Assembly: GCF_000150275.1 (NCBI RefSeq)
Contig: NW_002060958.1
Span: 752,272-816,271, forward strand
Length of the DNA stretch: 64,000 nt
Direction of reading: 5' to 3'
Origin: Trichoplax adhaerens
Taxonomy: Eukaryota; Animalia; Placozoa
The notes beneath the pieces were generated by a model. The model was not told the DNA's origin, did not search any database, and was given only the letters and a program-made list of their open reading frames with translations. This document shows, in pieces, positions 9,297 to 57,706 of the stretch; within the stretch, counting starts at the first letter, position 1, and every line of letters starts with the position of its first letter. The position numbers and the translations under genes were made by a program.

Positions 9297-10364
9297 ATGC
9301 ATTTCTACCATAATTCCACCATTGAACCATCATATTTAGATGAAGATGACAAAAACTTATCATTTACTGTATACAAATATGGAGCCTGCATCTCATCTCT
9401 TACTCTGGTTACCAACACAATAGTAATTACCGTAATTCTCAGTAAACCCAACCTGAGGATAATCTCCAATGCCATCCTTTTAAGTAGCTGCTTGGCCGCA
9501 TTATTATATGGCCTAATAATTATTGGCACTGCTCTAGTCTCAACATACGCTGTTAACCCTTTCAAAGACATAATATTGTATTGTGTTCTGGGCAAGACAT
9601 CAGAATTGACTGCACTCAGCATCTTTAATTTACATTTAACATCATTAAGCTTGGAAAGATTTTTTTCTAGTATCTATCCATTCAGATATCGGCGTTTAAT
9701 GTCCATAAGAAATTCATTTGCATATATACTTATAATTTGGCTTATTCCATCGTGCATCATATTTTTATTGGCTTTGATCGCCAGTTTTGCGAATGGTGGT
9801 GATTGCACAGCTTGGATGGATATTATCGCTATTGATATCTTTTTTAGTTATATCGTTTTGCCAATAATATTTTTAACCCCACCATTCATAATGTTTATAT
9901 CTTATGCTATCATCGTATGGAAAATATTTTCCATGCAACGCAAAATTTCAGCAGTGTCAATACTTATTGATTCAACACCTCTATCAAGATCTAAATTAAT
10001 GCAAAATTGGAAGGCTATATTACAAATGTTTATTGTTTTAGGATTTTATATATCGGCATTTTATCCTTTCGTTATTTGCTATATCATATTAATTGCCGCA
10101 CCAAATATCGACGTATCAGATGCAACTACAATATCATACTTACTAATTATCTCTTATATTGCAATTCATCCAATTATTTCGGTTCAATTTACGGCTCCTG
10201 TTAAGGACGAAATAAGAAAACCGTTAAGAAGAATTTATGAACTATTTCAATCATGGCTTAGCAATTCCGCATTATTTCGATGTTGCAATGAGAAAACTGA
10301 TGACAACAGTTCTCGTCAACTCCATGTGCAAACATTAGATTCCAGAATAATCAGTTTATTTTAA
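9297..10364 (+). CDS. Intronless rhodopsin-like (class A) 7TM GPCR, cluster member 1 (355 aa, E3.32 subtype)
   Basis: 7 hydrophobic helices; N1.50 (LVTNT), C3.25, SLERFFSSIYPFRY, W4.50, ECL2 DCTAW, TM6 FYPF, TM7 IHP, helix 8 APVKDEI. Confidence 0.93.
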   Translation: MHFYHNSTIEPSYLDEDDKNLSFTVYKYGACISSLTLVTNTIVITVILSKPNLRIISNAILLSSCLAALLYGLIIIGTALVSTYAVNPFKDIILYCVLGKTSELTALSIFNLHLTSLSLERFFSSIYPFRYRRLMSIRNSFAYILIIWLIPSCIIFLLALIASFANGGDCTAWMDIIAIDIFFSYIVLPIIFLTPPFIMFISYAIIVWKIFSMQRKISAVSILIDSTPLSRSKLMQNWKAILQMFIVLGFYISAFYPFVICYIILIAAPNIDVSDATTISYLLIISYIAIHPIISVQFTAPVKDEIRKPLRRIYELFQSWLSNSALFRCCNEKTDDNSSRQLHVQTLDSRIISLF

Positions 10365-10439
10365 ATCAAAAACATGCCTTACTTAAATATCAGTCAATCT
10401 TTAATATCTAACTATTGCTCTCACTATTCGATTCCCATA

Positions 10440-10890
10440 CGATAGATAGTTTACCCTCAGCTCCACTCTAGCCGAATACGACTACTAGAAAATCTTCTAG
10501 AAAGAACTACTGAATAAGCTACAGTTTCCTGTTTAAATACTCTTCATAGCATTTGCAGCTATAGTCTTCATAGCAATACACTACCTTATTTCACTTTTAG
10601 GTTATTAGTAATAAAAGTTTTTTACTGCAAACTATCTGTAGTCTAATATGTTAACTGCTATAGTATTTACTCTAAGTAAAGATTACGAGTCGTATTCCAA
10701 TGTATGATGAATCAACCATATCCTATTATATGAATTACAAGCCTATTTATACCTTTACCACCAATAGAGACTCAATACCCTACTGTACATAGTCATCTGC
10801 ATTCTAGCGTAGAATATTCAACTATGGTCTATGACTGCATCTTACTAAATATGACTAATAGCCTACAATCCAATACTAACTTACATTATA
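10440..10890 (-). mobile_element. Solo-LTR-like element, family E (partial)
   Basis: CTAGCCGAATAC, GCATTTGCAGCT and GTCATCTG blocks shared with 58678-59227. Confidence 0.75.
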
Positions 10891-12260: not shown

Positions 12261-12622
12261 AGTTTAAAGTCAAAATGCATGACGTTCAAGTACACATTAT
12301 AATTATTGTTATAAGTTCTTTTGTTATTAATAATTCGATAGAAGAGCTATTTATAATTGGAACTGATGATTAAAAATACCAAAACCATACCTTAAATGTT
12401 TGTATTGATCTTATTATTCTTACCAGAAATTTTAACGAATTTGGATTAATTGCTGTAAAATAGATTGAGTAACTTAAAAGTCGTTCCTTGGTAAAGCTAA
12501 TACTCCACTGCAGTACCACATATATGCTGTGCTTTAATAAATAGGCGCATATTACGAGTATCTAGGGTAGAGTAACTACTCTGTTCCAATTTACACTTGA
12601 GATATTCAACCATCCTAAGGCA

Positions 12623-13729
12623 ATGGAAGAGAATAGTTTATCAACGGCATTTTCTGATTTGAAGACTTATAATTCATGTAACAGATCGTGGAACGGTAAT
12701 TCCGAAGCTTTCGGAAATTTTATATATTTACCTTTATCCGTTATTGCTATGGCTACTTTGATATGTCTGATGAATGTCTTGATGCTATTACTGGTTCTTG
12801 CCAGCAAGAAATTAAGAACTTTATCCAATGCTGTCTTTTGTAGCAGCTGTTGCTGTGGTATCCTTATTGCATTCACCTTAATGGCTATTTCCCTTACTGG
12901 TAATTTTGCTCTTGAACCACTGAAAACAAAAATTCTTGGTTGTGCTTTAGATTCCCCAACTCAAGTTACACTTGTTTGCATTTTCAATACACATATTTCT
13001 CTTATGACTTGTGAAAGATGTTATTCAGTTATTTTTCCATTTAGATATAGACGTTTGGCTACGAAAAGGAATATTATCGTAATACTACTTCTAGCATGGA
13101 TTATACCAATTTGTTTAATCTACATAGTGGCAATGTTAAGTTCAAGAATTTATTTTCAAGATTGCACTAGCTGGGCCAAAATAGTAAATGTTAAAGTATT
13201 CATTACATTTATAGCGTCCCCAATAATTTTTCTGTTCCCAATTGCTTTCACTCTTACTGCTTATATTATTATTATCAGCAAGATTTACTCGCTCGAGCGC
13301 AAAGTTACGCGTATTAACGGCATCGATTCTAAGTGTTATTCAAGACGAACTTACTTGATGGTGAAAAATAAAAAAGCTATTCTCCAAATGGTACTTTTAT
13401 TAAGCATCTATATAATATGTTTATTTCCATTTTGTATAATTTATGTCGAGCTAGTGCCAACAACTGTTAAGTACGGGTTCATATCTAAAATAACTTATTA
13501 TCTGGCGACGACTTATTATTTTATTCATCCACTGTTGGTAGCTTTCTTTACCGCTCCAATTAAGGAAGAAATCGTAAAGCTATGGCAACGGTATTGTTAT
13601 TGCGCTGACTTTCTACAGCAACTTTGCAATAGACCAAAGATAATCCGTATCAACAGTAACACTTCTAATGCAAGTCGAGAATATATAGCAAATTCGATTG
13701 ATAAATTTAGTTTTCAGAAAAATTGCTGA
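12623..13729 (+). CDS. Intronless class A GPCR, member 2 (368 aa, Q3.32 subtype)
   Basis: 7TM; TCERCYSVIFPFRY, DCTSW, KAILQM, IHPLLV, APIKEEI; clear paralog of the other members. Confidence 0.93.
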   Translation: MEENSLSTAFSDLKTYNSCNRSWNGNSEAFGNFIYLPLSVIAMATLICLMNVLMLLLVLASKKLRTLSNAVFCSSCCCGILIAFTLMAISLTGNFALEPLKTKILGCALDSPTQVTLVCIFNTHISLMTCERCYSVIFPFRYRRLATKRNIIVILLLAWIIPICLIYIVAMLSSRIYFQDCTSWAKIVNVKVFITFIASPIIFLFPIAFTLTAYIIIISKIYSLERKVTRINGIDSKCYSRRTYLMVKNKKAILQMVLLLSIYIICLFPFCIIYVELVPTTVKYGFISKITYYLATTYYFIHPLLVAFFTAPIKEEIVKLWQRYCYCADFLQQLCNRPKIIRINSNTSNASREYIANSIDKFSFQKNC

Positions 13730-14440
13730 TCAAAGTGCCTGAACGTTCCTATATCTTATTAAGTACTTAGAGGTTCCTTATTTTTAATCGCTTATTTATT
13801 CAATATACACTTATATACGTATATATTTCATACCAAAATGAGAACCATTTTTCATCACTCAATGGTATTGGTAAAATAGAAGGTAAACTCTTAAGTGACG
13901 ATACAGCAATTGAGTATTACTTATTTTATGCTAGAACCTATTTTAGTTGTGATTAAAACTGTGCAAGACAAGGTATCATATTCATTTCGTTATGTTTATA
14001 ATTTAGAATATGAAAGGTAAATAGTGCATTAAATAGTCTCTATTACAGTAATTATTTATTTTTCGAATTATGTTTGAAAAAACTTATTGACCTATTCCAA
14101 GTTATTGTGTCTCACTAGGTATATCAATTAGAGTAAGTCTATTATAAGAAATATCTAAGTAAGATCTTAAATTGACCATCAGCAATCTAGTAGAATTAGC
14201 AATTCACAAATTTGCTATAAATTATAAATACTTTGTAGAGATACAACAAAAGATTACGTCTTATTAATTGCGAGGGCTTATACATGAAACTAGACTATCG
14301 ATTGCCGATGGCTCTTAAATCTAAATTAAAGTGATGAGCATATCAACCGAAATAAGTTCTCGAGTTAAACCATAACGATTTTAATAAAGAAAAATCTTTA
14401 CAAATTTTTCTTGACTTCTGTTGTAATGGCAGACATATGC

Positions 14441-15070
14441 TGTCACAAAACAGCTTTGCAACAAGATAAGGTAATGTACGATCAATAAGTCAATTCCTTG
14501 AACCACGTATCAAGGAACGATATCTGCACTACCACAAACACTTTTGCTCTACTAGTAGACTACACAAAGACTTAGACGCCTCGTATTTTATGCTAAACAC
14601 TAAGTTTAAGAATCCTCTTTATTACACGATATACTGCATTTATATACTCTTCCTCAATAGTTCATCAGTCCTAGTTGGTACGATTACCTTTGGAATCACT
14701 TACAGAATTAGATATTAATTTTAGCTACTGCTCCCTTAATGCAGACAACAGTATTTACGAACATAGACATCTGATAACTAATACAGAATAGTCAGATTAC
14801 GATATATCCTATCACGAAACGTTTCCACGATAACTTACAATCAACCATAAGTAAGTTACAATCACAATGATTTGAACTGTAAGTAGATGATTTGCATTCC
14901 CTATTATAACTATTAATTTCAGTATGTGTATATGTGTCACTGTCATAAAAAGTCAGTGCTACATTAAAATACAGTATATCCAAATTAGAAGTGAACTAAA
15001 TAAGGATAGGCTAACAGAATTATCCTAATATAGATATTTCTACTCTAATACAGTATATAACACTGTCACA
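14441..15070 (-). mobile_element. Solo-LTR-like element, family B (630 bp)
   Basis: TGTCACAAAACAGC...CTGTCACA; TSD TATGC; colinear with 39720-40348. Confidence 0.9.
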
Positions 15071-15795
15071 TATGCATATATATATATATTAAATTTTTTA
15101 TAGCTTCGATTTATCATACTAATGAGGACTAACGTTAGTTAGAATGCTAACATCGCCATTTTGAAATAGCTTAGTGTCACAAAACAGCTTTCGTGATCGA
15201 ACCTAAACTAGTCTATCTACTCTATTTAATCACTGACTAACTCCAGGATGTATTCTATTCGGAAACTGAACTTTTCCAATAGTAGAGAATCGAGGTAGAT
15301 GATAGAAGTTTAGGCTATTTATATTTCATTTACTAGTAGCAATATCATAAATTAGTATAGGAGAACTGTAAGCCAGTCTTAGTAAATTTGATACGAAACA
15401 CTCTTCAACAATAGTTTTAATCACACGACTTGATTTCTTAACCTTAAATCTCTCAGCAAAACTAAAGATCGTAAATATTAGCTATTTGTAAACAAGAAGC
15501 ATCAAGCTCTTTAACACATAAATTTATAGATTTAGAATAAAGCATAGATTCGTTCTAATTCGCTATCATTTGAGTTCATTCTCTACGGTAATAATATACA
15601 ATTCTTCGTGCAGCCAACATATAATTCACCGATAATTCCAGCGGTAATTTATCGACGTTGCATCATCAAATATTAGCGGTTATTAAGTAACGGCATACTA
15701 TAAAATTATCAACAAGGACAGTAAAAGTGATTCTCAGTTTATCTTAATTTAAGGAGGAATATCTTATTATTTTTAACTCTTTACCAAAGTCTTCG

Positions 15796-20541: not shown

Positions 20542-20591
20542 NNNNNNNNNNNNNNNNNNNNNNNNNNNNNNNNNNNNNNNNNNNNNNNNNN
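20542..20591. other. Assembly gap (50 N)
   Basis: Run of N. Confidence 1.
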
Positions 20592-21209: not shown

Positions 21210-21308
21210 ACCATATATACAGATTCCAAAAATTCTAACTCATAGAAATTCATTACTATTTCATTAAAAAGCCATCCAATTAGTTTACAAAGTTCCGCTA
21301 TCTTAGTG

Positions 21309-22404
21309 ATGATTCAAAATTGCACATTAGCAAATTTGACCAATGCAGAATCGCCTAACGATTCGCGGAATTGGTTTATGTACTATCATCTGTATAAAAC
21401 TCTATTTGCTGTTGCTATCGCGGCTTCATTATCTTTCATGAACTTAACAATACTACTACTTATCCTAACGCGAAAAAGGTTAAAAATCTTATCCAATGTG
21501 TTATTTTGTAATAGCTATTGCAGTAACAGTGTCTTCGCGCTAATGGTAATCGCTCTCTGTATTATTAACAATTTCATTTCTAAACTGAGGCAGATACAAA
21601 TTATTGGCTGTGCGTTCGATGCTCCAACTCAAATTACATTAGGTTGTATTTTCAATACCCATATTTCTCTTACGGCTTGCGAGCGGTGCTTTTCAGTTAT
21701 TTATCTCTTTAAATATCAACGTCTAGCAACAAAGATAAATATTTTTATAATTTTATTCTTAGTATTGACTTTACCTATAGGATTTATTTATATGGTGGCT
21801 ATGTTACGGTCATTCTAACAATCATTCCTAAGAATGGTCGATTATTCCCAGGAATGGGCGGTCATTCTTAGGAATGATTGTGGTCGTAGCTTTGGCTGTG
21901 ACCAATCTTAAGGACAAAATCATTCTTAGGAATGGTCGTAAGAGCTATACTAAGTTCACAGCTATATTTCGAAAACTGTACTGGCTGGTATGATATGCAG
22001 GGCACATACATACATATTGAGCTTGTCGCACCTTACTTAATGTTTCTTTTTCCCATCAACTCTACGGTTGCTGCATATATTATTATTTATAAAGTTCATT
22101 CTATATGGTCTAAAGTATTTCCTAAGTTAAGTGCTATAAGAGTCGGATATGGTACCAATAGAACTGACGTGATGTTAAGAAGCCAAAAAGGAATACTACA
22201 AAGGGCAACGTTTATAAGCATATATTTAATTTGCTGTTTACCACTATTTACTCTTTTCGTGAAAATAATACCTTCATATTTTAAGCATTTTGCTCTCTGG
22301 TACTACATCGCATATTATTGGCAAATATGTACTTTTTCATTCATCCAGTATTAGTAGTTTATTTCACACGTCCAATAAAGGAAGAAATCATTAAACTATT
22401 TTAA
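21309..22404 (+). pseudogene. Class A GPCR pseudogene, member 3 (Q3.32 subtype)
   Basis: ORFs 21306-21818 and 21932-22354 join in frame once a 132-bp TA-flanked insertion (21807-21938) is removed. A second 1-bp deletion near 22318 hides YYLANMYFFIHPVLVVYFTRPIKEEIIKLF*. The ICL2 Pro and W4.50 are also lost. Confidence 0.9.
21807..21938. mobile_element. 132-bp MITE (Tc1/mariner-type TA TSD) inserted in GPCR member 3
   Basis: TA|CGGTCATTCT...GGAATGGTCG|TA; four CATTCYYARGAATG-type palindromes; excision restores the GPCR frame. Confidence 0.85.
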
Positions 22405-25574: not shown

Positions 25575-26642
25575 ATGAATTATACAGCAACAAATTTACC
25601 TGAGATCAAGCCGTGTAATTCTTGCAACGGATCAAGTTACAACTGGACTTTAGGTGATTATCTGCATCTACCTTTATTCGTTACTGGCATCGCTGCATTA
25701 GTATGCCTAGCAAATTTGGTAGTATTACTATTGGTTCTTACTCAAAAGAAATTGAGAATTTTATCCAATGCAGTATTGTGCAGTAGTTGCTGTGGCGGAA
25801 TTATTATCGGATTATCTGTACTTTTGATTTCTTTTATAACAAATTTTGTTGCCGAGCCAAGACAATCTATAATTCTTAGCTGTACATTCGATATTCCATT
25901 CCAAACTGCAATTTTTTGCATTTTTAGCATGCACACTGCTCTCATGGCTTGCGAAAGATGCTTTTCAATAATTTATCCATTTAAATATCAACGTCTGGCT
26001 ACAAAAAGGAATTTTTTCATAATTCTTCTAATCGCTTGGATCATACCGATTGGGTTAATATATATTTTACCGTTAGTAAGTTCACAAATATATAATGGAA
26101 ATTGTACTGGATGGGTTTACATGACGAGCTTATATACATTTGTCGGATATATCATGCCAAGTCTAGTAGCTGCTATTCCTATCATTTTTACTCTAGCAGG
26201 ATATATTATTATTTTAACCAAGATCTACTCAATGCAGCGTAAAGTATTCCACCGTGTCAGTAGTGTAGATATGAATCCTTACCCAAAGTCTGTCAAATTG
26301 ATGTTAAAAAATAAGAAAGCAATTTTCCAAATGATACTTTTTCTGAGTATTTACATTGCTTTCGTACTTCCATTTTTCCTGTTTCATACGGAAATCGTGC
26401 CTTATACAGTTGAATACTATTATGATGGATATGGTATAACATATTACGTAGTAATAGCTTACTTTTTTATTTATCCAATGTTAGTAGTTTTCTTTACTGC
26501 TTCTGTTAAGGAAGAAATTACTAAGGTATGCAAGATATACTTTACTTGTGGCCATCTTCCACGTCGATTTCGTAATCGACGAAAAACTACTCAGATAAAT
26601 AGTAATATGACAAGGATGAGTCAAGAGAAAATTGAAAAGTGA
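25575..26642 (+). CDS. Intronless class A GPCR, member 4 (355 aa, Q3.32 subtype)
   Basis: 7TM; ACERCFSIIYPFKY, NCTGW, KAIFQM, IYPMLV, ASVKEEI. Confidence 0.93.
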   Translation: MNYTATNLPEIKPCNSCNGSSYNWTLGDYLHLPLFVTGIAALVCLANLVVLLLVLTQKKLRILSNAVLCSSCCGGIIIGLSVLLISFITNFVAEPRQSIILSCTFDIPFQTAIFCIFSMHTALMACERCFSIIYPFKYQRLATKRNFFIILLIAWIIPIGLIYILPLVSSQIYNGNCTGWVYMTSLYTFVGYIMPSLVAAIPIIFTLAGYIIILTKIYSMQRKVFHRVSSVDMNPYPKSVKLMLKNKKAIFQMILFLSIYIAFVLPFFLFHTEIVPYTVEYYYDGYGITYYVVIAYFFIYPMLVVFFTASVKEEITKVCKIYFTCGHLPRRFRNRRKTTQINSNMTRMSQEKIEK

Positions 26643-28066: not shown

Positions 28067-28437
28067 TATAAATGATAGTACAATTAGAAAATTTAGGAGA
28101 GAGAGTGGAAGAAGATTCTTTTGAAGAACTTGTTGAATTTAAAAGGCCTTCGGGGTCGAATTGTCATAAGTTAAAACGTTCTTCTTTTTGAAAGGTTGTT
28201 TGGTCGTTGACAGTTTCTATGTCTGTCACTTATTTTATTAATACTTAAAGGTAAGTATTTGTAAGGTAGTTTGGTTTATACTTCTCCCCATTTTTTTGTA
28301 ATTAATTGTTGTTCGATTATTTCCCCAAATTTTATTTGGTGTCAAAGCTTCGTTAAGTCGACCGGAGTGCAACGAAAGTAGAATCAAAGTTTATTAAAGT
28401 TTTGTAGCTTGATCTCTACACTTTTCATTTCATTACA
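28067..28437 (+). mobile_element. Truncated family-C element abutting the GPCR fragment
   Basis: Reverse complement of ~40606-40984; ends TTCATTACA. Confidence 0.85.
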
Positions 28438-28439
28438 CA

Positions 28440-28826
28440 ACATATGCTACAATCAAATGGAAAGTTTACACTATGCAGCGTAAAATTCGATCGGAAACAA
28501 ATGATAGACTGAATTACAACCATTTTATAGTGCTTGCTGTAATGCTACAACATAAAAAAGCTATATACCAAATGTTGTTACTATTAACAGTGTATGCGCT
28601 CTGCTTTTTCCCTTTCTTTATTTTGACTAGAATCCTACAAGATAACTGGAGAAACATTTATTTAATTGAAGTAGCAACAACTTCTTTCCATGCCTTATCT
28701 ATTTATCTATCACTTCATCCTGTATTGGTTATTTATTTCAATGCTCTTATTAAAAACTATGTTTAGACGATACTGCAACAATTTCGTTTAACATTGCGGT
28801 GTAGAACAATAACGAGACTATACTAG
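28440..28826 (+). pseudogene. 3' fragment (TM5 end to TM7/H8) of the cluster GPCR family, member 5
   Basis: TYATIKWKVYTMQRKI...KKAIYQM...FFPF...LHPVLVIYFNALIK. Begins 2 bp after a truncated family-C element; TM1-TM4 absent; in-frame stop at 28764-28766. Confidence 0.85.
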
Positions 28827-35984: not shown

Positions 35985-37008
35985 ATGAATTCCAGAAATA
36001 CAACGAATGATACAAGGATAAATGTGTTCATAGTGGATCAATATAATATCGCTATAATAAGCTGTTTCCTTTCTCTAATAATAAACATTGCGACGTTATC
36101 TTTAATAATCGGCAAAGCAAGATTACGAAATGTTTCCAACGCAATAATTTGTAGCAGTTGCTTCTGTTGCTTATTTTATGCAATCATTGTGATAAGTAGC
36201 TTTATCATAAGGAGATCGACAAACATTTCTGTTATAAAAGATATTGCTTCAATGTGCCTTCGGTCCCGTAACTGAAGTCACTTGTGCTTGCATAGTAAAC
36301 TTTCATGTAACAGTGATAAGTTCTGAAAGATGTTGCAAAATTATTTATCCCTTCAAATATAAAAGACTAGCTACTACAAGGAATGTGAGTTTTATTATAA
36401 TCCTGATTTGGCTTCTTCCAATTTTATTACTGTATATCTTAAATATCATCGTTTCCATTTCTCGACATGGTAGTTGCACAGTCTGGCATGAAATTGTTGG
36501 AATTGATAATTTTCTGGATCATATTATATTACCTATAATATTATTCATACCTCCCGTAATTGTATTAATCACATATCTTATAATTATTTATAAATTAACC
36601 AAGATGCAACATAAAATTGGCTTAGAAATACCAACAACTGGAAATCGACCGACAAAATCATCATTAATTTTACAAAACAAGAAAGCCTTACTCCAAATGG
36701 TTTTAGTCTTAACTGTTTACATGTTGGCCGTATGTCCATTCTTTATCATCCACATCGCATTTAGGGCCAATAATGATAAAGAAAATATTTTATACCGTAA
36801 TATTGCCTATCTAAATGCAATGTGTTATCTTTGTTATCATCCGATCTTTATCATTTGCTTCACTGTACCAATAAAAAATGAAGCTAAGAAAATCGTCACT
36901 GAATACTGTAATAGCAAGAATTTTTGTTGCCTATTCCAGTGCTACAGTAAAAATAAAGATCTTTCGAGACCTCATTTACGTACAACTACTTCGAATAGAA
37001 GTAAATGA
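35985..37008 (+). pseudogene. Class A GPCR member 6 with a single frameshift (recent pseudogene, null allele or assembly error; E3.32 subtype)
   Basis: ORFs 35985-36275 and 36244-37008 fuse into a full 7TM protein if one AT unit is restored near 36243 (KD-I-LLQC, cf. member 1 KDIILYC); no other lesion seen. Confidence 0.88.
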
Positions 37009-38446: not shown

Positions 38447-38496
38447 NNNNNNNNNNNNNNNNNNNNNNNNNNNNNNNNNNNNNNNNNNNNNNNNNN
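38447..38496. other. Assembly gap (50 N)
   Basis: Run of N. Confidence 1.
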
Positions 38497-38748
38497 GAAC
38501 TTTAACTATTATAAAAAATAGTATACTTATACAACTTTTATCACGCCTATATTTTGTTTAATTCCTTTCCCAAGAATATAGGAATACTTGTGTCTCCTAT
38601 ACCATCGAATTCGTAATAAAGTAATGTCTTAAAAAACTGTTAAACCAGGCGGCAAATTTTGTTCTAAATACGAAATTAATTAAATTCAGATAAGACTCTA
38701 AAATTATTAATCAAAAAATTTTATATTCTGTACTACATCATATCATAT

Positions 38749-39190
38749 TGTCACTGTACGAACTACCATGAAGAAATAGATATCTAAATTTGGTGAATAT
38801 AATATAGAGATAATATATTACAACTATTTACTTACAATAGGAATTACTCTAATTATAAATGTGTTACAGCAAATTTAATGCTGTGCTGTAATAAGCACTG
38901 AAATGATTCTGTGAATGGACATATTGTAGTCCGACTGTGAAAAATTAGTTAGTAGATGTTCTCATCTCAGTACTTTTATAAGATAACTCGTGAATGTTAG
39001 CTGCTGTAGAAGGGTATATAAGCCTGTCAGATATTTGAATAAAGCAGTTCTCAATTGTCTAGTTGAGTTTAACGTAGAATCAAAGGCGTTTAGATTCTTG
39101 TGAGGTAGTTAAGGGATACTAAATCCCGGAGACTATAGAGATTTAGAGATTTGTTTTACGTTATCCTTGTCACGAAGCTGGTTTGTGACA
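38749..39190 (+). mobile_element. Solo-LTR-like element, family A (young, 442 bp)
   Basis: TGTCAC...GTGACA; TSD CATAT; GGGTATATAAG followed by AATAAA. Confidence 0.92.
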
Positions 39191-39719
39191 CATATGCCAT
39201 CAAAAAATGACGACCTGAAGATCAACTCAGCTCTTTTTTATATCTTGTGACCAGCAAGTAAACTTTATCGAAAGAAAATTATGATAATATCATTTAATTA
39301 AAAGCAAATTAAAATTTTGAAATTGCAATACATAAAATAATTCTATATTAGAAATATATCGGTAACATAATATATTGTACTAAACTAATGTTAATAGTAA
39401 GTTATTCAAATTTAAACGTTCCATAATTTTAATAAAATTGCTTTTAACTATCAGCCACCTATATTATGAAGTAAACTCCTGAATAACTAATATATAACAG
39501 ACAGTAGCCATTAGAATATTAACCAAATTCCATCAGTTGACTAAAAAATTGGCCTCAAGCTATCAGTCTAATACAGTCTGATACAGTAACAAACATACGC
39601 AAAGTTTTCTACTTTCTCAAGGAAATCATCAGGATTTAAATACGTCCGTTCGAGGTCTGGCGCGAGACTGGACGCTTAAATATCATAAATTCTTAAATTC
39701 TTAATTTAATTAAATATGA

Positions 39720-40348
39720 TGTCACAAAACAGCTTTGCAACAAGATTACGTAATGCACGATCAATAAATCAATTCTTTGAATCACGTATCAAGGAACGAT
39801 ATCCGCACTATCAGAAACGCTTTTACTCTACTAACAGACTACACAAAGACTTAGACGCCTCGTATTTTAAGTTAAACACTAAGTTTATGAATTAACTTTA
39901 TTACGCGATATATTGCGTTTATATACTCTTCTTTGATAGTTCATGAGTCATAGTTAGTACAATTAACTTTGGAATCATTCACTAAATTAGACATTAATTT
40001 TAGCTACTGTTCCCTGATGCAGACAACGGTATTTACGAGCATAGACATCTAATTACTAATACAGAATAGTCAGATTATGATATGTCCTGTCACAGAATAT
40101 TTCCACGATAATTTACAATCTATCATAAGCAAGTTACAATCACAATGATTCGAACTGTAAGTAGATAATTCGCATTCCCTATTATTACTATTAAATTCAG
40201 TATATGTATATATGTTACAATCACATAAAGCCAGTGCTATATTAAAACACAGTATATCCAAATTAGAAGTTAGCTAAATAAAGATAGGCTAACAAAATTA
40301 TCCTGACATAGATATTTCTTCTCTAGCATAGCATACAAGACTGTCATA
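39720..40348 (-). mobile_element. Solo-LTR-like element, family B
   Basis: TGTCACAAAACAGC...CTGTCATA; TSD TATGA. Confidence 0.9.
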
Positions 40349-40441
40349 TATGATAATAAAATTGTATCAATATGAATATGTGTAATGAAGGCTAATTTTA
40401 AGAATTCTTCTTTAAGTTTTTATGTAACTTTAGTAAGTATT

Positions 40442-42380
40442 TGTGACCGTGTTATATACGGTATTAGAGTAGAAACATCTATGTCAGGATAATTCTGTTA
40501 GCCTATCCTTATTTAGTTAGCTTCTAATTTGAATATGCTGTGTTTTAATATAGCACTGAATTTTTATGACAGTGACACATATACACATACTGAAATTATT
40601 AGTTATGTAATGAAATGAAAAGTATAGAGATCAAGCTACGAAACTTTAACAAACTTTGATTCTACTTTCGTTGCACTCCGGTCGACTTAACGCTAATACT
40701 TTGACACCAAATAAAATTTGGGGAAATAACCGAACAACAATTTATTACAAAACAAAAATGGAGAGAAATATAAACCGAACAACCTTACAAATACTTAGCT
40801 TTAAGTATTATTAAAATAAATGACAGACTTAAAAACTGTCAACGACCAAACAACCTTTCAAAAAAAGAAGAACGTTTTAACTTACGACAATTCGACCCCG
40901 ATGGCCTTTTAAATTCAACAAGTTCTTCAAATAAAATCTTCTTCTACTCTCTCCCTAAATTTTCTAATTGCACTATCATTTATAGGCTTCGTAAAGCCGT
41001 CAGAGGTATTTAAAACTAAACATTTGCTAACCAATCGCTCTTAAGATCCGTTTTAGAAAACTACTTTGCACCATTTAAGAAAACAAAAATCATTCAAAGT
41101 TCAGACACAATTTACCCTACGATTCCCTTACAAAACACTATAAAACTAACAAGCTAACTATAAAAATACATCAAACTTCATTTCTAACATAATTTCTATC
41201 ATTAATACACTATAAAAGTCTAAAAATCAACCTTTAAACTTCAAGATTTGGTCATAAAAACAACATTCTAGCTAACAATCAACACAACCTGCCAATTTCC
41301 ATCTTATTTTCTATTTTCCTCACTAAATCTCCTAATGTGACTTCAAGTCACGTCATAAAATTCCAAAGTTTCAAATTCATAACAAAAAGTCCAAATCTCA
41401 AAAATCAACTCTTACGATATTTTTTACAAATTAAAATAAAGAAAACAAATCCGAATTTTTGTAAAGATTACAATACTCGCTTTTCGCTGATCAAAAAATT
41501 TTATATGACTATCACAATTACTTTTCTGACATTAGTTTCGCTGAGTATTGACAGTTGATGTTTTAGCGTCAGGTTGTACTATAACTGTACGATGATAGAC
41601 TACATTATAGTACTTTACCGTCATGTTATAAATCCCCTTTCTCTAAGGATAGAGTTTTGCTACTAAGTTAAATTTAGTTACAATTTGAATAGACGATCAA
41701 ACGCCCTTTCTTTAGATTAGGCATTTGCAACTTCTATATTAATCTATATATAATACCTTGTAAAATAATGAAGAAGAAAAGATGGCGACATGATGATTTG
41801 GCAGGGTAAAACTTAAAGACACTATCACTTTCTAGGTATTTTCTATAGTAAAATAATATTAATTACATACTAAAAACTACAAAGGACTCTACTTTTTAGT
41901 CCTTTACTACAGTTATAATAAGGAATGCGAATTATCTACTTACAGTTCGAATCATTGTGATTGTAACTTACTTATGATAGATTGTACATTATCGTGGAAA
42001 TGCTCCGTGATAGGACATATCGTAATCTGACTATTCTGTATTGGTCATCAGATGTTTATGTTTGTAAATACTGTTGTCTACATTAAGGGAGCAGTAGCTA
42101 AAATTAATATCTAATTTAGTGAATGATTCCAAAGTTAATCGTACTAACTATGACTCATGAACTATTGAGGAAGAGTATATAAATGCAATATATCGTGTAA
42201 TAAAGTCGATTCTTAAACTTAGTGTTTAACGTAAATACGAGGCGTTTAAGTCTTTGAGTAGTCTGTTAGTAGAGTAAAAGTGTTTCTGATAGTGCGGATA
42301 TCGTTCCTTCATAAGTGGTTCAAGGAATTGACTTATTGATCGCATATTACATTATCTTGTTGCAAAGCTGTTTTGTGACA
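40442..42380 (+). mobile_element. Solo-LTR-like element, family B, split by a nested family-C element
   Basis: TGTGAC...GTGACA; TSD GTATT; the halves 40442-40605 and 41912-42380 rejoin to the family B sequence; TATATAAA then AATAAA at ~42177-42204. Confidence 0.9.
40606..41911 (-). mobile_element. 1.3-kb TG...CA element, family C (long solo LTR?), nested in family B
   Basis: TGTAATG...TACTACA; 4-bp TSD GTTA; second partial copy at 28067-28437. Confidence 0.85.
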
Positions 42381-43279
42381 GTATTGTAACTTTAAAAAGT
42401 AACTTAACTTGGGTTTAACTACCGTAGGTTCTACTTATTGTTTTAGTATATCGTTAACTCGATCACTTTATTCGGGTTAGAGTTGAATAACTTTCAATAA
42501 CTTAACTTTGTTAAGAGTTATACAATGTAACATTGTGAATTTAGCTATATGTTAAGATAACATAGTATTTAAGTTGCAATCTTGATTAAAACTACCAGCT
42601 AATTTTGATTAAAAGTTACAGTAGAAATGATGCTACTTTGTAATAAAGTACAGTAGAAACTCGAACATTCTAATTAGGGTTCTAATTTAAGATAAATGAT
42701 CTATTATGATGTTTTATTATAGTTGCATTTTGTATATTGTAGAAAATATTTTTTGTAGTCGAATTACGATAAATTATTATTAATTTGATCATTCCGGAAT
42801 CTAGGGTATAATTTGTCTAGTCAAATGTATTTAATTGCTAGTTTGATTTGGTTTACCTTAGAATTAAGAGATGGTAGTCTGATACCAGCTACTGATCTGT
42901 GTAGCAAATAAAAGGTGCCATAATTCAGTAGTTTAGGATTTTCCTAATTCGAGAGATATCGTATTTTACGTTGGTAGCTTGATAGGTTTAGGCAATAATT
43001 TTGCCCTTTTTATAATTTTTTAGTACAATTGATAAGATTTTTAGATAATTTATTACAATAAATTGGTGATCTTTCCTAATTTCCTTATCTTGGAATTGAA
43101 AGCTGGAAGTTTGACTTGAATTTTTCGTTCATTATTACTTATATATGTATGAAATCACAGATTAACCATTAAAGACTTCTGCACATAACAATTTAAGAAA
43201 ATGAACTTAAAACTGATAATACTTTACTTAATTTTATCTCACTATTCAAGTAGCCACGCACCTTCATTCATTGATATCG

Positions 43280-45201: not shown

Positions 45202-46167
45202 ATGGAAGGCAACTATCGAGATCAGAGTCAAAGCGAATTTTCACCTTTGCATAATCTCACGGCGACTGGTATTAATTTTACTACAGTTCAATACCTTCTG
45301 CCAGGGGTTATCATTTCATTAACTGCGTTACTTGTTGACTTTGCAGTAATAATCCTGATTTTAGCCAATCCTCGAGTAAGAAAGATTTCTAACTCCATTT
45401 TTTGTAGTAGCTGCTTCTGTGGCCTTCTTTCTTCAGTTCAAACGATAGCAGTTGTCTTAAATCTTCTTTATGAAACGGATTACTATTTCAATGACTTTAT
45501 AGAATGTTTCCTGGATGAAACGATAGAGTTATCGTTATTTGCAGTCTTTAATATTCATGTTACGTTAATAAATCTTCAACGATGTTTATCAATCATATTT
45601 CCTTTCAAATATCAGCGTTGGGCTACTCGAAGAAACGTCGCCATTGCAATAATTTTAGCTTGGATTGTTCCAATTGGAGTAATTTTTATGTTATCACAAT
45701 TCATTTCTCTTGTCACTTTTGGAAATTGCTCGGAATGGTATCAAGTAAGCAGTGCTAACATTATTGTAACTCGCATTCTGTTACCAATTACTTTCGTCTT
45801 GCCTCCTTTAGTCACCATTGTGACTTATAGCATAATTATTAGTAAAGTTTACTCGTTCCAGAAAAAGTTTAGGAGTCAATGCAATTCTACACCATTGCCC
45901 CAGTCTTCATCTAGCCATCAATTAATGTTCTTGCACAGAAAAGCTCTCATTCAAATGGCTCTGGTCTTAGGGGCATATAGCCTGTCTTTGTTTCCATTAT
46001 TTACAGTATTAACTATCCTTACGATATCCCCTAATTTTTCACTATATGCTGCTAGCGAAGTCACATATTGTATAGCTGCAACGTATATCTTTATTCACCC
46101 CATTTTGGTTGTCTACTTTACGGTAGATCTTAAAGCGGAGATAAAAAAGAGACTTACACGCTACTAA
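45202..46167 (+). CDS. Intronless class A GPCR, member 7 (321 aa, E3.32 subtype, short C-tail)
   Basis: 7TM; NLQRCLSIIFPFKY, NCSEW, KALIQM, IHPILV; N1.50 replaced by D. Confidence 0.9.
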   Translation: MEGNYRDQSQSEFSPLHNLTATGINFTTVQYLLPGVIISLTALLVDFAVIILILANPRVRKISNSIFCSSCFCGLLSSVQTIAVVLNLLYETDYYFNDFIECFLDETIELSLFAVFNIHVTLINLQRCLSIIFPFKYQRWATRRNVAIAIILAWIVPIGVIFMLSQFISLVTFGNCSEWYQVSSANIIVTRILLPITFVLPPLVTIVTYSIIISKVYSFQKKFRSQCNSTPLPQSSSSHQLMFLHRKALIQMALVLGAYSLSLFPLFTVLTILTISPNFSLYAASEVTYCIAATYIFIHPILVVYFTVDLKAEIKKRLTRY

Positions 46168-51369: not shown

Positions 51370-51995
51370 TTTTACGATGTCATGCACTGTAGTGTCGAGA
51401 TTAGAGCAGATGTGTCTATGTTAGCATAATTTTGTTAGCTTACCCATATTTAGAGAGTTTCTAATTTAGATATCTGGTGTTTAAATATAGCACTAGTTTT
51501 TATGATATTTATCATATACATATACTGACATTTATAGTCAAATTAGGGAATCAAGAATAGTCTATTTACAATTCAAATCGACGTGATTGTAACTTACTTA
51601 GGGTAGATTATAGATAGTCGTGGAAATGTTCCGTTATAGGACATATTGTAATCTGACTATCTTGTATTAGTCGCTAGATTCTATGTTCGTAAACAATGTT
51701 ATCTTCGTTAGGTAGGAGAAAGTAAAATTAGTTTTTGATTCATTAGTAGGTTGCAATGCTAATATTACTAACTAGAATGTCTTAAAGAATATATAAATGC
51801 GAACTACCGTATAATAAAGTGAGTTCTCAAGATGTTTTTTTAACATAAAATACAAGGCATATAAGTCTTTTTGCAGTCTGCTAGTATAGGAACAGTATTC
51901 ATGATAGCGTAGTCATTGCTCCCTGATACGTGATTCAGGAAATGGACTTATCGATCGTACATTACACTATCTTGTTTCAAAGCCGTTTTATAACA
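51370..51995 (+). mobile_element. Solo-LTR-like element, family B (diverged)
   Basis: Aligns to 40442-42380 minus the insert; TSD GTACA. Confidence 0.82.
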
Positions 51996-54546
51996 GTACA
52001 CTTACGTTGGTAGATAATAACTATTATAGACATAGTTGTTCTCTTGAGCTAATATTTAACATCTCGCTTTATTTACAAAGAGCATCCACCTAGGTAAAAT
52101 ATTCATAATAATAAGGGAATCTAACGCCTAATAAGTTAAAACATAAGTAGAAGAGAGGATAGATGGTATCCTACGGCTCCACTATTCTAATTCTAATAAG
52201 TATACACAGAAGATATGTAAAATATGATAGTCTTGCCGGAGTTTTTAATCAAGATTCACTTTACCTAACATAGAAATTATTGGTTTAAAATACAGTCATC
52301 GAATATAAATTATAAATTCAATACTGATAGCTGTTATGTTGGAGAAATAATTTGAATCACTATTTCTAATATAGGTACCTACGAGGACACTAGTATCTTC
52401 CTTAATGGAGAATATTTTTAAAACTTCTGACTCTATTGTAGCAATATTTAGGATTGAATTCAATTTTTGTAATCATTCAATAAATTTCATACTACACCGA
52501 TTTTTGTAAATATAGAACTAATGTACTAACTGTTATTTCACGATTTTCGCCATATATTCCTATGTTACTGAGCCCGCATAATTAAGGCAAAATATGGTAC
52601 AATTTACTTAATAAGACAAATGTAGATGGCAGATACTGATATACTCTTTATAAAGAAATAGATTTTATCAGCTGAATAAAGCAAATAAAAAATTGCAGAC
52701 TTGAAGTAAAGTTATATTTATTAAGTATTCAACAACTTGATCTAATCTTTATATTGATGAGAATTTAAGACACTATACATCAATTTTCTATTCAATTTAC
52801 CCATGCATTTTAGAACTAGCATAATTTATAGAATTATTTTAAGATTTTGAATGTACATGCAATATTCTCTTATATAGTTTACTTGAACATCATTGTAACA
52901 AATATCTTACACATTTATATGATAACTTAAGCACGTATTTTATTTGATTCTAATTTATCTCATGGAATTTTATAATGGCAGATTTAGTTAGGAATTATCT
53001 GTAAGAAGTTTTACAATAATATTTATTCTTGTTGTCCTAGATACTAATTTTACGAAATAGACTAATATATTCAAAGTAGACAGAATACAAATAATTTGAA
53101 ATTTTATTTATTTAGCAAAGTAATTGCTAAGCATAAATAAATCATTAGAGCACATGGCATCAATTTGTTATAAAGGATACAATAACCTTTAAAAAGAAAT
53201 TCCATGGCATTATATATTCATTCATTGTTATAGGTTAAGAATTGAATCGCAATTTGGATATGATGATAAATAAAGCTAACGAAAGCTACTATTGTAGCTA
53301 CGATAAATCCTGTAATTTTAATTTATTAATGGATTAATATTTATTACGTCAGGAGATATATTTTCTTGGAGGTAAAGAGAATTTTTTAAACTGAATTCTA
53401 TGGACATAATCTTTAACGCCACTATCATATGATCAATTTTCCTTATTTATATTAGCATAATACTTTGCAACTGAAACAATAAATGCTGAAACAGTGTGTA
53501 TTTAATATTATTAGGAGGAACGATCTTATTAAACACCAAGATATCCTCTGAATTTATTGTTATAGTAAACAATATTATTTTTAAATATGTCTAGTATTAT
53601 TAGTACCTTCTGCATTGTTCTAAAGTAGCAAATTCTCAAGTAGTCATATTCTTTTCATGACCATATATTAACGATAAACCCATACGTAAATTACCCATAA
53701 TTATTTCTGTATAAAAATTTACTGAAATATTTTTAGTTCTTAAAAAGTAATTGTGGTCGCGATAACGTTAATCCTACATAGAAAGTTAACTGCACAAGAG
53801 CACCCGTTTGTTGCTTTAAATTTAAAAACTTCTATTTCAATTACTTCATCAATTCTTTATCATGATCATACAAGCCAATTAAAACTATGATAGCCAGAAG
53901 CGAATAAATTTTGCGATCTAAAACTGGGTAGAAAACAGACTGACAGAATAACGCTAATCATAATTGAAGTATTTCATACTCTTTTTAGTTCTTATTCCTC
54001 TCCCAATAAAACGATAAGTTTGCACGCATTGGAATATTTAAAGATGTCTGTATATTAACTAAGAATACAGGAATACGACTAGATGTAATGGGTTTACTCG
54101 TTAGATTTTGGAGCAACTGTAAGACACATCGTGGTGCGATTTTTAAAATTAAAAGTCTTAAAACAAACTTTCGTACCTATTTAAAATAAAATACAACATG
54201 ATGATATATACTTTCAAATTAGAATACTTCCGAATTTTAAAACTTATAACTATGGTTCAAAGAATAATTGATGGAAATAAAAGTTAGTTCAATTTATGTT
54301 CATTCATTGCTTGCCAGGCATATTTAAAATAAGGAAGGAAATAATTTTTATCCATTGTAAGGCTTACAAGTGCAAGACAGAAATTGAAAGAAAAGAGTAA
54401 AAATTAATCCGAAATTTTTAAACTATTGTTATTGCTACTAATACTATTTTGCAACGCAGTTGTTAAATAACTAAATGAAGTCTCAGTTTAAACATACTAA
54501 ATTAGAACAACTTTAATTTTAAATAATTACTATGATAAGAATTGCT

Positions 54547-55090
54547 CTAACAATATAGAAATTTAAAATTTTTAATATATTCACGGTTCATTAATTAATA
54601 ATTGCCCTTGTCATTAACATAATAATCATTTACTGTCCACCATAATACCAAAAGGAAATACTCCTATAAATATATATGCCATCCTTTTATGGTTTTGTTG
54701 ATTGAAACGGAACAATCATGTATTCTTATCGCTGTTGCAATATGGATGTCTATTTATTTTCAATTAATCGGTGCATGGCTATAGCACTGCACACAAATAC
54801 GAGGAAATAAAAATCTTGGCCTTTGCAATTCATTTCTTCTCCTGCGGTAAACATAATGTCTTAATATCACCAATTTTAAACTCCAGGTAATCAAATCTAC
54901 GTAATTTCAGGACATAATCGCCTTCATTTATAATGCAAAAAGGAATTTAGAAGCAATTAAGATGGCATTTGAATTTCTAATTAATTACAAAATTAAAGCT
55001 TTATTAAAGTAGATGCTTTAAAATTGCAGCTAAAACGTAAAGGAGTTCTCTTAGACAATATGCATCATTAGCAAATATTAGTTCAAAAGA
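54547..55090 (-). pseudogene. Possible fossil class A GPCR remnant
   Basis: FANDAYC, LIASKFLFA, TLCLP, NHKRMAYIFIGVF, Y*LMNREYIKNFKFL (helix 8, 54547-54600). Confidence 0.4.
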
Positions 55091-56632
55091 ATGTTTTAAA
55101 TTGATAAATGGTAAAAATTAATATTCGATGCACCTGGCTAATCACCTTATTCTACTTGATTAGAAACATAACTCTAGTATTAACGTAGACTATGAAGTAT
55201 ACGAAATTAAAGTAATACAAGTATTTTCATTCTCACTAAATCGGTTAATCTGAAGGAGAAGATCACTGGATAAGAATCAGACTATTAATTTTGAATTGCT
55301 TAGAAATCTTCAATCAGTTCTCATTTAACTTATTATCATCTTTAATTTACCCAGAAGTGTAGCAACTACCAATCGCAGAGACTGAAAATTTTCAACATAC
55401 ATAGCTGGTGCGGTGCAACCTGCTCATTTCGCTGTATTTGATACTTCAGCAATCTTCATATATTTAGAAGAAAATTAAAGAAAATTTTTACATAGGACAA
55501 GCGATATTCCTCCTAGCTTTTGAGAACTTAATTCTACCAGTAAGGCAAGAAAAATTATCCTTTCCTTTCCGTTAAATGTACACATTGACGGAGACTTTAT
55601 ATGAAATTAATTAAATTTATCAAGAAACATCCTTTCTTGCACCGATAAATTTCTAGGGAGAATTTATAACTCACATACTGAAATTACAAATTTATGTGAG
55701 TATTGAAAATGGTGAACATTGTTTATGTTATGTACAAAGATTATTTAAATTTTTTACATTAATTTCAAGCCGTAGTCAATACTGAATACCTTTTAATAGG
55801 CCGGGAGAGAAATTTTAATGCAAAATGCAAAAGCTTTTCCTAATCTATATCATCTAATTGGAGACTAAAGGTAGGATTTAATAATATTCCTTCCATCCTT
55901 ATTACCTTGCTATGATAAGTAACATTGATAAAGAATTTTGCATAGATATGCAATTTAGACCCTGCAATACTACAGATACTGCTCTCAATAAATTTGAGTA
56001 TTAGTTTCACAAATACAATCTCTTATAAACAATTCTAAGAATCTCGCTTGGTGAGATGTTTAAGTATAATAATTTCAAGTTACCTAGGTATATTTAATTT
56101 TTAATCTGTTTCTACTCATAGAATGTGTTAAATATTAGCAGTTATCAATGTACAGCTCAAACATTTTATAATTTAAAACTATCTTTAAATCTATTGATGA
56201 TACTCGTATTATAAACATTTTCAATTAATATTTTTTTCATTACAGAAGGTTAGGGATAGCATACAATTTATTTTTTATTGTTATTCTTTGCAGAGAGAAT
56301 TTGGGCTAAATACAAGTTTGAATATCCAGCTATTCTCAGATCTCTGAATGATATTTAAGCAAGACTAAGTCAATCCTGGTCACCCTATCATATTTTTTTA
56401 CGTTATCAAATTTTATTGAAACTTTAATTTGTAAGCAAATAGAATATCTAGTTGGCAAAATATACGCATGCTTCAAGCTGTTAAAGATCAACATCTAGTA
56501 CTCTACTAATAAGGAATAGAGAAGAAAATTGTTCAAATTAATTCTTTATATAATAAACCAACACCGAATTCAACCAACACGAGCACTAATTTTACGCTGC
56601 AAATCGAACACGCACTTACGTAGTTATCTACA

Positions 56633-57706
56633 ATGAACTTTTACAATTATAATGCAAGCAATACAACTAGGCCCTTCGATCGCCATCAATTAGCCGCGAT
56701 TATTTCTATGCCAGTTATATTAACTAACTCGGCGCTGGTAATTACCATTTGCAGTAAGAGAAAATTAAGAACACCATCTAATGCTATTATTTGCAGTAGC
56801 TGCCTTGCATGTATGGTATTAGCAATTTTATTAACTTGCAATGCAATTGCATCTTTCTATGAGGACCAAATACAATCAACATTCTTGCTTTGCTTGCTAA
56901 ACAACGCTTCTGAGTTAACTAGCTCAGCAATTATAACATTTCATATCACTACAATCAGCCTAGAACGATTTTTTTCTGTCATCTATCCGTTCAAATATCA
57001 ACGTCATGCTACTCAACGTAACACAAGTTTATTAATAGTAGCATTGTGGTGTACACCAATTTTCATCATTTTTGGACCAGTAATTATTACATCATTATCT
57101 CTAAATGGTCATTGCAAAGATTGGTCAGAAATAGAAGCATTAAGGATTGTCTGTTATTTTGTTTTATTTCCTATAGTATTATTTTTACCGCCAGTTATGA
57201 CATTTATCGCTTATTCAGCTATGATATATAAAATTTTCGCCATGACCCGGAAAATTTGGTCACAAAGTAGTTTTATGTCGAATCAGCGACAAATTACTAA
57301 ATATCAATTAATGATGGTCCACAGGAAAGCCTTATTCCAAATGTTACTGTTATTAAGTATTTACAGCTTATCATTTTTCCCCTTTTTCACCTTTTATACT
57401 ATTTATATACAATCACAAGGGCAGTTATTTCGTACAACTACGTATATTTGTTACTTAATAGCAGTGGCCTACATTCTAATCCATCCTTTATTATCGATTC
57501 TATTTACTGCTCCCATTAAAGAAGAAATAAGAAAAAAATTTAAACAATTATGCTCTTCTGCATGTTTTAAACTTGGAGAAAAAACTGTCCGAACTCCGAT
57601 CTCAACGATTATCGATGAAGGATTTAAATCGGTTGGACACGAATACCAATTAGATATCAGGAAAATATCACCTAATCATTCATCGAATCAAATCATCTTA
57701 TTATAA
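56633..57706 (+). CDS. Intronless class A GPCR, member 8 (357 aa, E3.32 subtype)
   Basis: 7TM; SLERFFSVIYPFKY, HCKDW, KALFQM, IHPLLS, APIKEEI. Confidence 0.93.
   Translation: MNFYNYNASNTTRPFDRHQLAAIISMPVILTNSALVITICSKRKLRTPSNAIICSSCLACMVLAILLTCNAIASFYEDQIQSTFLLCLLNNASELTSSAIITFHITTISLERFFSVIYPFKYQRHATQRNTSLLIVALWCTPIFIIFGPVIITSLSLNGHCKDWSEIEALRIVCYFVLFPIVLFLPPVMTFIAYSAMIYKIFAMTRKIWSQSSFMSNQRQITKYQLMMVHRKALFQMLLLLSIYSLSFFPFFTFYTIYIQSQGQLFRTTTYICYLIAVAYILIHPLLSILFTAPIKEEIRKKFKQLCSSACFKLGEKTVRTPISTIIDEGFKSVGHEYQLDIRKISPNHSSNQIILL

Follow-up and report, generated by a model that had tools for sequence, protein, structure and literature searches.

How much of the activation machinery of a rhodopsin-class (class A) G-protein-coupled receptor (GPCR) can be exchanged in a receptor that remains under selection? 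This question is raised by a stretch of 64,000 nucleotides of Trichoplax adhaerens (C1399:752272-816271 of the 105.6-Mb assembly, GC content about 30%; hereafter the window), which carries eight receptor loci in tandem. The sodium pocket, W6.48 and the NPxxY motif, treated as near-universal class A activation machinery, are all replaced in them. An initial annotation had described the loci as a lineage-specific, sodium-independent family with a coordinated loss of these elements and the look of a chemosensory repertoire. Our data confirm the losses but not their coordination. We consider it rather probable that the loci belong to a placozoan-specific clade related to aminergic receptors, which lost the canonical core in steps and consists of working receptors with a replaced core.

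The receptor loci and their class

Exactly eight rhodopsin-class loci were found in the window, all on the plus strand between positions 9297 and 57706; neither the list of open reading frames (ORFs) nor tblastn searches with the intact paralogs nor a hidden Markov model (HMM) scan of all six frames brought up further rhodopsin-class homology there. They are listed with their diagnostic residues (TM, transmembrane helix; the three-letter motif stands at the DRY position, the five-letter motif at 7.49-7.53).

9297-10364, plus strand: L1, intact, single-exon, 355 amino acids; A2.50, E3.32, F3.39, ERF, F6.48, HPIIS
12623-13729, plus strand: L2, intact, 368 amino acids; G2.50, Q3.32, F3.39, ERC, L6.48, HPLLV
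21306-22404, plus strand: L3, pseudogene; N2.50, F3.39, ERC, C6.48, HPVLV
25575-26642, plus strand: L4, intact, 355 amino acids; G2.50, Q3.32, F3.39, ERC, V6.48, YPMLV
about 28383-28784, plus strand: L5, pseudogene fragment from the end of TM5 to TM7; KAIYQM, F6.48, HPVLV
35985-37008, plus strand: L6, one 1-bp frameshift, otherwise open; C2.50, E3.32, V3.39, ERC, V6.48, HPIFI
45202-46167, plus strand: L7, intact, 321 amino acids; D1.50, G2.50, E3.32, F3.39, QRC, L6.48, HPILV
56633-57706, plus strand: L8, intact, 357 amino acids; C2.50, E3.32, I3.39, ERF, F6.48, HPLLS

Five loci are intact single-exon ORFs of 321-368 amino acids with mutual identities of 28-48%, and three (L3, L5 and L6) are broken. 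On the Pfam family 7tm_1 (PF00001, curated cut-off 30.5 bits) the intact loci scored 47.9-67.3 bits (L1, 56.5 bits) and the C-terminal part of L6 55.5 bits; the pieces of L3 and L5 stayed below the cut-off since they are fragments only. For the nematode families Srx and Srsx (PF10328, PF10320), seven of the eight pieces were under the cut-off, and L4 reached 24.3 bits with an Srx cut-off of 23.8. Searched against the PDB, the profile of the family matched the octopamine beta2 receptor and the beta2-adrenergic receptor (beta2AR) best, at an E-value of about 1e-24. The AlphaFold2 model of L8 is a bundle of seven helices followed by helix 8 at residues 293-315 (pLDDT 79.5, pTM 0.76); Foldseek placed 5-HT1E and the beta1-adrenergic receptor at the top of its matches and gave a probability of 1.00 to at least 500 GPCR chains. 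The two cysteines of the disulfide between TM3 and extracellular loop 2 (ECL2), C3.25 and the ECL2 cysteine, are invariant. By profile and by fold, the loci are rhodopsin-class GPCRs. Within this class they are best placed as relatives of the aminergic receptors, not as members. The aminergic set D3.32/W6.48/F6.51-F6.52/Y7.43 is not present as such: 3.32 is E or Q, and the tyrosine stands at 7.39 and not at 7.43.

Loss of the sodium pocket and of the activation switches

Residues were numbered by phmmer with L8 and by a 15-sequence profile, aligned with HMMER to 5-HT1E, beta2AR and the octopamine beta2 receptor. N1.50, C3.25, R3.50, W4.50, P5.50, P6.50 and P7.50 served as anchors and TM2 aligned unambiguously (L7 has an aspartate at 1.50).

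Position 2.50 reads A, G, N, G, C, G and C in the seven loci that contain TM2 (L1-L4 and L6-L8). None of these seven has an aspartate or glutamate anywhere in TM2, so that the absence of D2.50 holds whatever the register. In the same loci 3.39 reads F, F, F, F, V, F and I, and 7.45 is a tyrosine. The canonical set D2.50/S3.39/N7.45/S7.46/N7.49 is missing, and none of the residues present would be capable of building the sodium site. R3.50 is kept in all seven loci with TM3, flanked by E or Q at 3.49 and by F or C at 3.51. All eight loci have other residues in place of W6.48, N7.49 and Y7.53; since P6.50 and P7.50 are retained, the CWxP and NPxxY motifs are altered, not deleted. These states are common by descent, so that for each site a single event is to be counted instead of eight. 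As a positive control, 40 other Trichoplax 7tm_1 genes were put through the same pipeline; 35 of them had D2.50, and most also S3.39, N7.45/S7.46 and NPxxY.

The initial annotation had reached its residue assignments by hand. On the anchored numbering they stood: D2.50 is lacking in the seven loci with TM2, 3.39 is F/V/I, DRY has become ERF/ERC/QRC, W6.48 is gone and NPxxY has become (H/Y)Pxx(S/V/I) in all eight, and no aspartate at 2.50, no asparagine at 7.49 and no tyrosine at 7.53 came to light. The motifs that it had called new and shared fared differently. CxxW in ECL2 occurs in each of the seven loci with this loop, its cysteine being the canonical disulfide partner. KA(I/L)xQM in TM6 is shared by seven of eight loci (L3 has KGILQR) but is not new, as it aligns to KALKTL of beta2AR, corresponds to the aminergic K6.32-A6.33...T6.36-L6.37 and recurs in the wider family described below. 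The helix-8 motif xIKEEI exists in approximate form only (PVKDEI, LIKNYV, PIKNEA, DLKAEI); it aligns to F(R/K)xxF and recurs in the wider family as well, so that it is not new either.

A conserved core and G-protein face, and a variable ligand pocket

Column entropies were calculated over 15 members of the clade to which the window loci belong (clade A). The mean over all TM positions was 1.81; the pocket exceeded it (2.06), while the core (1.09) and the G-protein face (1.22) stayed well below. Near-invariant residues of the core are S2.45, S2.46, C2.47, H3.42, Y6.44, Y7.45, H7.49 and P7.50, and 2.50 is variable yet always small. The G-protein face retains R3.50, Y5.58, K6.32, A6.33, Q6.36, M6.37, F7.56 and an amphipathic helix 8. 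Intracellular loop 2 (ICL2) follows the pattern (Y/F/H)PF(K/R/H)Y in all 15 members, with PFKYQ as in beta2AR. The pocket has three conserved positions, E/Q3.32 (R or H in two clade-A loci that lie beyond the window), F6.51 and Y7.39; 7.43 is aliphatic and the remaining positions vary. This pattern suggests related cationic ligands with diversified specificity.

Extent of the family and order of the losses

A profile search of the genome delimited clade A to 18 loci, all on the plus strand, within about 376 kb of contig C1399 (482.7-859.0 kb; 482752-859047), plus one dispersed copy at C1409:5001613-5002530. Next in the ranking came no fewer than 50 other Trichoplax genes, likewise single-exon and distributed over many contigs (clade B, e.g. 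L018-L070). Motifs were tabulated for 65 Trichoplax genes and for 150 representatives of the library. Clade B lacks D2.50 (mostly G) and S3.39 and carries N3.40, H3.42 and Y7.45, but retains D/E-R-Y, W6.48 and NPxxY. Its small residue at 2.50, usually a glycine, is almost always paired with Y7.45, where the canonical residues are N7.45/S7.46; G2.50 and Y7.45 look like a compensating pair that may fill the sodium cavity.

The profile search was exhaustive over 1.84 billion representatives, of which the best 150 were examined. They fell into three tiers: 17 clade-A clusters above 230 bits, all from Trichoplax or placozoan-like metagenome sequences; clade-B types at 100-180 bits; and, ranked last, canonical aminergic-like receptors of cnidarians and arthropods (SLAxxD, D3.32, S3.39, DRY, W6.48, NPxxY). 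Among these best 150 of 1.84 billion representatives the family is placozoan-only. A small residue at 2.50, a non-serine at 3.39, H3.42, Y7.45 and monophyly define it as the placozoan D2.50-less family.

In a maximum-likelihood tree, clade A was monophyletic with a support of 98 (Shimodaira-Hasegawa-like approximate likelihood ratio test, SH-aLRT), clades A and B together were monophyletic against 12 canonical outgroups (100), and clade A was nested within clade B (80-92). The sister pair of clade A (L034, L063) has lost N7.49 and kept W6.48. Because clade A nests in a D2.50-less family and because its sister pair lacks N7.49 but not W6.48, the losses appear to have been stepwise: the sodium pocket would have been lost first, in the larger family, and W6.48, N7.49 and Y7.53 later, in clade A. 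This contradicts the coordinated loss that had been proposed, since at least 50 other genes without D2.50 and S3.39 keep DRY, W6.48 and NPxxY and the clade of the window nests inside them. What held true, on the other hand, was the description of a lineage-specific class A family whose intronless genes stand in tandem, share one orientation and are divergent (28-48% identity).

Two further observations were made in these searches. A first look at the whole genome gave 994 stretches that are candidates for 7tm_1; of these, 147 were scored, each with more than 112 bits, nearly all as one uninterrupted frame and in many cases clustered (e.g. C1407:1.31-1.50 Mb and C1411:7.6-8.0 Mb). One clade-A locus, L016 (C1399:624960-625939), is split into two overlapping frames. 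A gene model of Trichoplax sp. H2 (P0004, 372 amino acids, 'Octopamine receptor beta-2R' by name) unites them, which would be explained either by a short intron or by a frameshift that the annotation passed over.

Selection and turnover

The intact genes appear to be under purifying selection. L8 and its ortholog from another placozoan sample (P0002, 67% identity) gave a ratio of nonsynonymous to synonymous substitution rates (dN/dS) of 0.11 by NG86 and 0.21 by LWL85, and a second clade-A pair, L008 and P0008, gave 0.13-0.22; with a dS of 1-1.9, near saturation, these ratios are only approximate, though far from 1. The five intact genes of the window pooled against Trichoplax sp. H2 gave 0.28-0.36 (26 substitutions, noncoding divergence 0.81%), with about 0.27 for L4 and about 0.2 for L7. 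Values between 0.1 and 0.36 answer the question whether dN/dS lies near 1, as for disused genes: it does not. The derived residues are all retained in the orthologs. Between paralogs, dS was saturated and dN/dS was dropped as a measure of selection.

Four clade members have one-to-one orthologs across placozoan species (two pairs measured, 0.11-0.22, a small sample), and two foreign clade members have no Trichoplax partner. One-to-one orthologs at a dN/dS of 0.1-0.2 argue for receptors that have been kept for long. Intact orthologs of the clade were also seen on short contigs, namely L071 (Logan, SRR30664516), L074 and L076 (ERZ23499115) and L075 (ERZ27263980), with 33-68% identity; they stem presumably from uncultured placozoans. 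For L2, a word-based homolog search for further orthologs returned only the identical H2 protein.

Three broken loci out of eight fit a birth-and-death turnover, which for the same reason is not slow. Clade A evolves by tandem duplication with occasional gene death.

Assembly quality and surroundings of the loci

Are the broken loci real? The independent assembly of Trichoplax sp. H2 (GCA_003344405.1) is collinear with the window at 99.0-99.97% identity. Three-frame reading showed that L3 is interrupted by a stop at 21816-21818 and a 110-bp insertion, and that its frame shifts a second time near 22300. The L3 region shows no difference over 1251 bp to H2 (100% identity, all breaks included), and L6, whose frameshift lies near 36230 between TM2 and TM3, has the same frame break in H2 without any indel. 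Since both assemblies share these breaks, the L3 and L6 pseudogenes are real, and assembly or sequencing error was ruled out as their cause. L6 is probably a young pseudogene. L5 is flanked by stops on both sides, as seen by tblastn, three-frame reading and the HMM scan (HMM match at 28413-28763, 85 bits). Other features of the window are as follows.

20542-20591, no strand: assembly gap, intergenic, 715 bp upstream of L3
21818-21932, no strand: palindromic dispersed repeat resembling a miniature inverted-repeat transposable element, inserted in L3 between TM4 and ECL2
38447-38496, no strand: assembly gap, intergenic, in the spacer between L6 and L7, adjoining a dispersed repeat

Both gaps lie outside all loci at a distance of at least 715 bp, and no reading frame crosses them. 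The first is spanned by 62 bp in H2, with collinear flanks at 99.6-99.97% identity. Hidden additional paralogs near the gaps were ruled out by the six-frame HMM scan. The repeat within L3 has at least 40 partial or full copies across many contigs of the genome.

Among the intact genes, L2 has an identical protein in the H2 assembly, and L1, L4 and L7 are 98.3%, 99.2% and 99.4% identical to H2 proteins P0009, P0007 and P0011, respectively. L7 has D for N at 1.50 and Q for E at 3.49 and stops right behind helix 8; these states are present in its H2 ortholog, too. T. adhaerens and H2 diverge unevenly (0 of 1251 positions at L3, 7 of 551 at L5, noncoding mean 0.81%).

L2 is the sister of L4 in the tree, and only these two are similar at the DNA level (65%); the remaining spacer repeats belong to dispersed elements, and a recent segmental duplication was ruled out. 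The spacers are filled by two interspersed repeat families in both orientations, up to 96% and 90% identical, one at 8309-8760, 30403-30843 and 38746-39197, the other at 14435-15074, 39714-40352, 41911-42384 and 51400-51996; one copy adjoins the second assembly gap. The H2 annotation has no non-GPCR gene with a recognised domain within about 10 kb on each side of the orthologs of L1, L4, L7 and L8. Judging by the H2 coordinates, contig NOWV01000239.1 is expected to end near window position 41239, which corresponds to the start of NOWV01000132.1.

Discussion

If the clade indeed consists of working receptors with a replaced core, its members would remain ligand-activated and G-protein-coupled, as their conserved G-protein face suggests. 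The network of water and sodium would have given way to a polar-aromatic core of S2.45, S2.46, C2.47, H3.42, Y6.44, Y7.45 and H7.49 that packs against the small residue at 2.50. The bulky Y7.45, H7.49 and Y6.44 may fill the former sodium and water cavity and supply the link between TM2, TM6 and TM7. With the water and sodium network replaced by such a core, the receptors are expected to be insensitive to allosteric sodium. The anchor of E/Q3.32, F6.51 and Y7.39 in a variable pocket points to related cationic ligands, which might be amines or basic or amidated peptides and would more likely carry messages from cell to cell within the animal than act as odorants.

Several points weigh against this reading. 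In canonical receptors, mutation of D2.50, N7.49 or Y7.53 usually cripples G-protein activation, so that coupling cannot be assumed here. The nodes that nest clade A in clade B reached only 80-92 SH-aLRT, in a quick tree search, the dS of the ortholog pairs is close to saturation, and three of the eight loci are dead. Exact-protein look-ups with L8 and with the H2 orthologs of L1, L4, L7 and L8 gave the H2 genome assembly only and no RNA-derived contigs. Finally, the window genes and six members of the wider family are absent from the supplements of a recent deorphanization study (Yanez-Guerra et al. 2025, 10.1101/2025.04.18.649542).

What else could such an array be? The initial annotation had in mind one coordinated rewiring that yielded a sodium-independent repertoire for environmental chemosensation, comparable to odorant receptor or trace amine-associated receptor (TAAR) arrays. 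The genes are indeed tandem, intronless, co-oriented and divergent, three of eight are pseudogenized with breaks common to two assemblies, the pocket varies more than other TM positions around a conserved acidic 3.32 as in the logic of TAARs, and there are weak Pfam matches to Srx and Srsx. We nevertheless judge this explanation unlikely. The losses were stepwise and mostly predate clade A. The array structure is not diagnostic, since of the roughly 1000 7tm_1 loci of Trichoplax nearly all of the 147 scored are single-frame, many of them clustered. Four members have clear orthologs in other placozoans, two pairs of which gave a dN/dS of 0.1-0.2; the Srx matches are far weaker than those to 7tm_1, and the look-ups for RNA-derived contigs were negative.

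Somewhat less likely still, in our view, are atypical receptors without ligand-dependent G-protein activation, be they constitutively active, arrestin-biased or scavengers and decoys. The stabilizers of the inactive state, the sodium pocket and E6.30, are all gone together with two activation switches, and receptors that lose D2.50 or the sodium site often show elevated basal activity or no signaling at all. Known decoy receptors, however, typically degrade DRY and ICL2, and here the parts that contact the G protein (R3.50, Y5.58, PFKYQ in ICL2, K6.32 and helix 8) are near-invariant; the conserved anchor of E3.32, F6.51 and Y7.39 argues for control by a ligand. That the motifs were lost through relaxed constraint on disused genes is largely refuted and appears most improbable. 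Three loci are broken and the look-ups brought no transcript evidence, but five ORFs of 321-368 amino acids have stayed open despite mutual identities of 28-48%, the derived residues are near-invariant over paralogs and species, and since the genes appear to be under purifying selection (dN/dS 0.1-0.36), the family is not decaying.

A bolder version of working receptors with a replaced core may be formulated, although we give it little credence at present: placozoans would have evolved an alternative class A activation core, kept by selection in dozens of receptors, first with the pair G2.50/Y7.45 and then with S2.46-C2.47-H7.49-Y6.44, a network that would take over the roles of N7.49, Y7.53 and W6.48. 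As this core is lined with histidine and cysteine, gating or tuning by protons or by metal and redox state instead of sodium could follow.

The family may be of use beyond placozoan biology. A single genome holds a graded series under apparent purifying selection, from canonical receptors over at least 50 without a sodium pocket to about 19 that also lack W6.48, N7.49 and Y7.53, and these most altered ones still keep R3.50, Y5.58 and an ICL2 like that of beta2AR. The series offers ready-made "evolutionary mutants" from which to learn which switches are dispensable and what substitutes for them. Placozoan biology gains a defined receptor clade, with an acidic anchor conserved at 3.32, that lies outside a published deorphanization screen.

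The established view of huge lineage-specific GPCR expansions in placozoans, already published (PMC10580291, PMC6067683), is unchanged by our data. Trichoplax sp. H2 has 923 GPCRs, most of them placozoan-specific, with combinatorial expression in peptidergic cells (Najle et al. 2023, PMC10580291). Five Trichoplax monoamine receptors were deorphanized in a screen of 56 receptors (Yanez-Guerra et al. 2025, 10.1101/2025.04.18.649542); those of its listed receptors that were examined are of canonical NLAxxD/NPxxY types. No paper dealing with D2.50 or with the microswitches of placozoan receptors turned up in the literature search.

Comparison with known systems

The aminergic receptors (beta2-adrenergic, octopamine beta2, 5-HT1E) share with the window clade the seven-helix fold, N1.50, the disulfide between C3.25 and ECL2, H3.42, R3.50, W4.50, P5.50, Y5.58, P6.50, P7.50, the ICL2 motif PFKYQ (beta2AR), K6.32-A6.33, F6.51/F6.52 and the amphipathic helix 8. 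Identity is just 15-21%, however. In the window clade D2.50 has become small and neutral, D3.32 E or Q, S3.39 F, V or I, D3.49 E or Q, E6.30 H or N, W6.48 F, L or V, N7.45/S7.46 Y-x, N7.49 H or Y and Y7.53 aliphatic or small; Y7.43 is absent, with a tyrosine at 7.39.

The nearest relatives are found in the wider placozoan D2.50-less family, for example TRIADDRAFT_56368, called 'Beta-2 adrenergic receptor' in Trichoplax sp. H2. This family is likewise single-exon, arranged in tandem clusters and placozoan-only, and shares N3.40, H3.42, Y7.45, KAxxQ in TM6 and (I/L)(R/K)xE in helix 8 with clade A. It has M2.46, G3.32 and F6.44, whereas clade A has S2.46-C2.47, E/Q3.32, Y6.44 and H7.49 and lacks W6.48 and Y7.53.

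MRGPRX-type and other class A receptors with degenerate microswitches are natural, signaling-competent receptors without W6.48 and with E-R-C for DRY, which keep D2.50 and NPxxY; they belong to unrelated lineages, and any likeness to the window clade would be convergent. Nematode Srx and Srsx receptors resemble the clade in their divergent microswitches and tandem arrays, but profile similarity to them is weak (up to 24.3 bits), whereas the window genes score 48-67 bits on 7tm_1, and tree and profile searches group them with aminergic-type receptors. TAARs form single-exon arrays on the same strand with an acidic 3.32, a variable pocket and birth-and-death evolution including pseudogenes, as the window clade does, and TAAR1 and TAAR13 were among its PDB sequence and fold matches, albeit without orthology. 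They differ from the window clade in that D2.50, DRY, W6.48 and NPxxY are kept.

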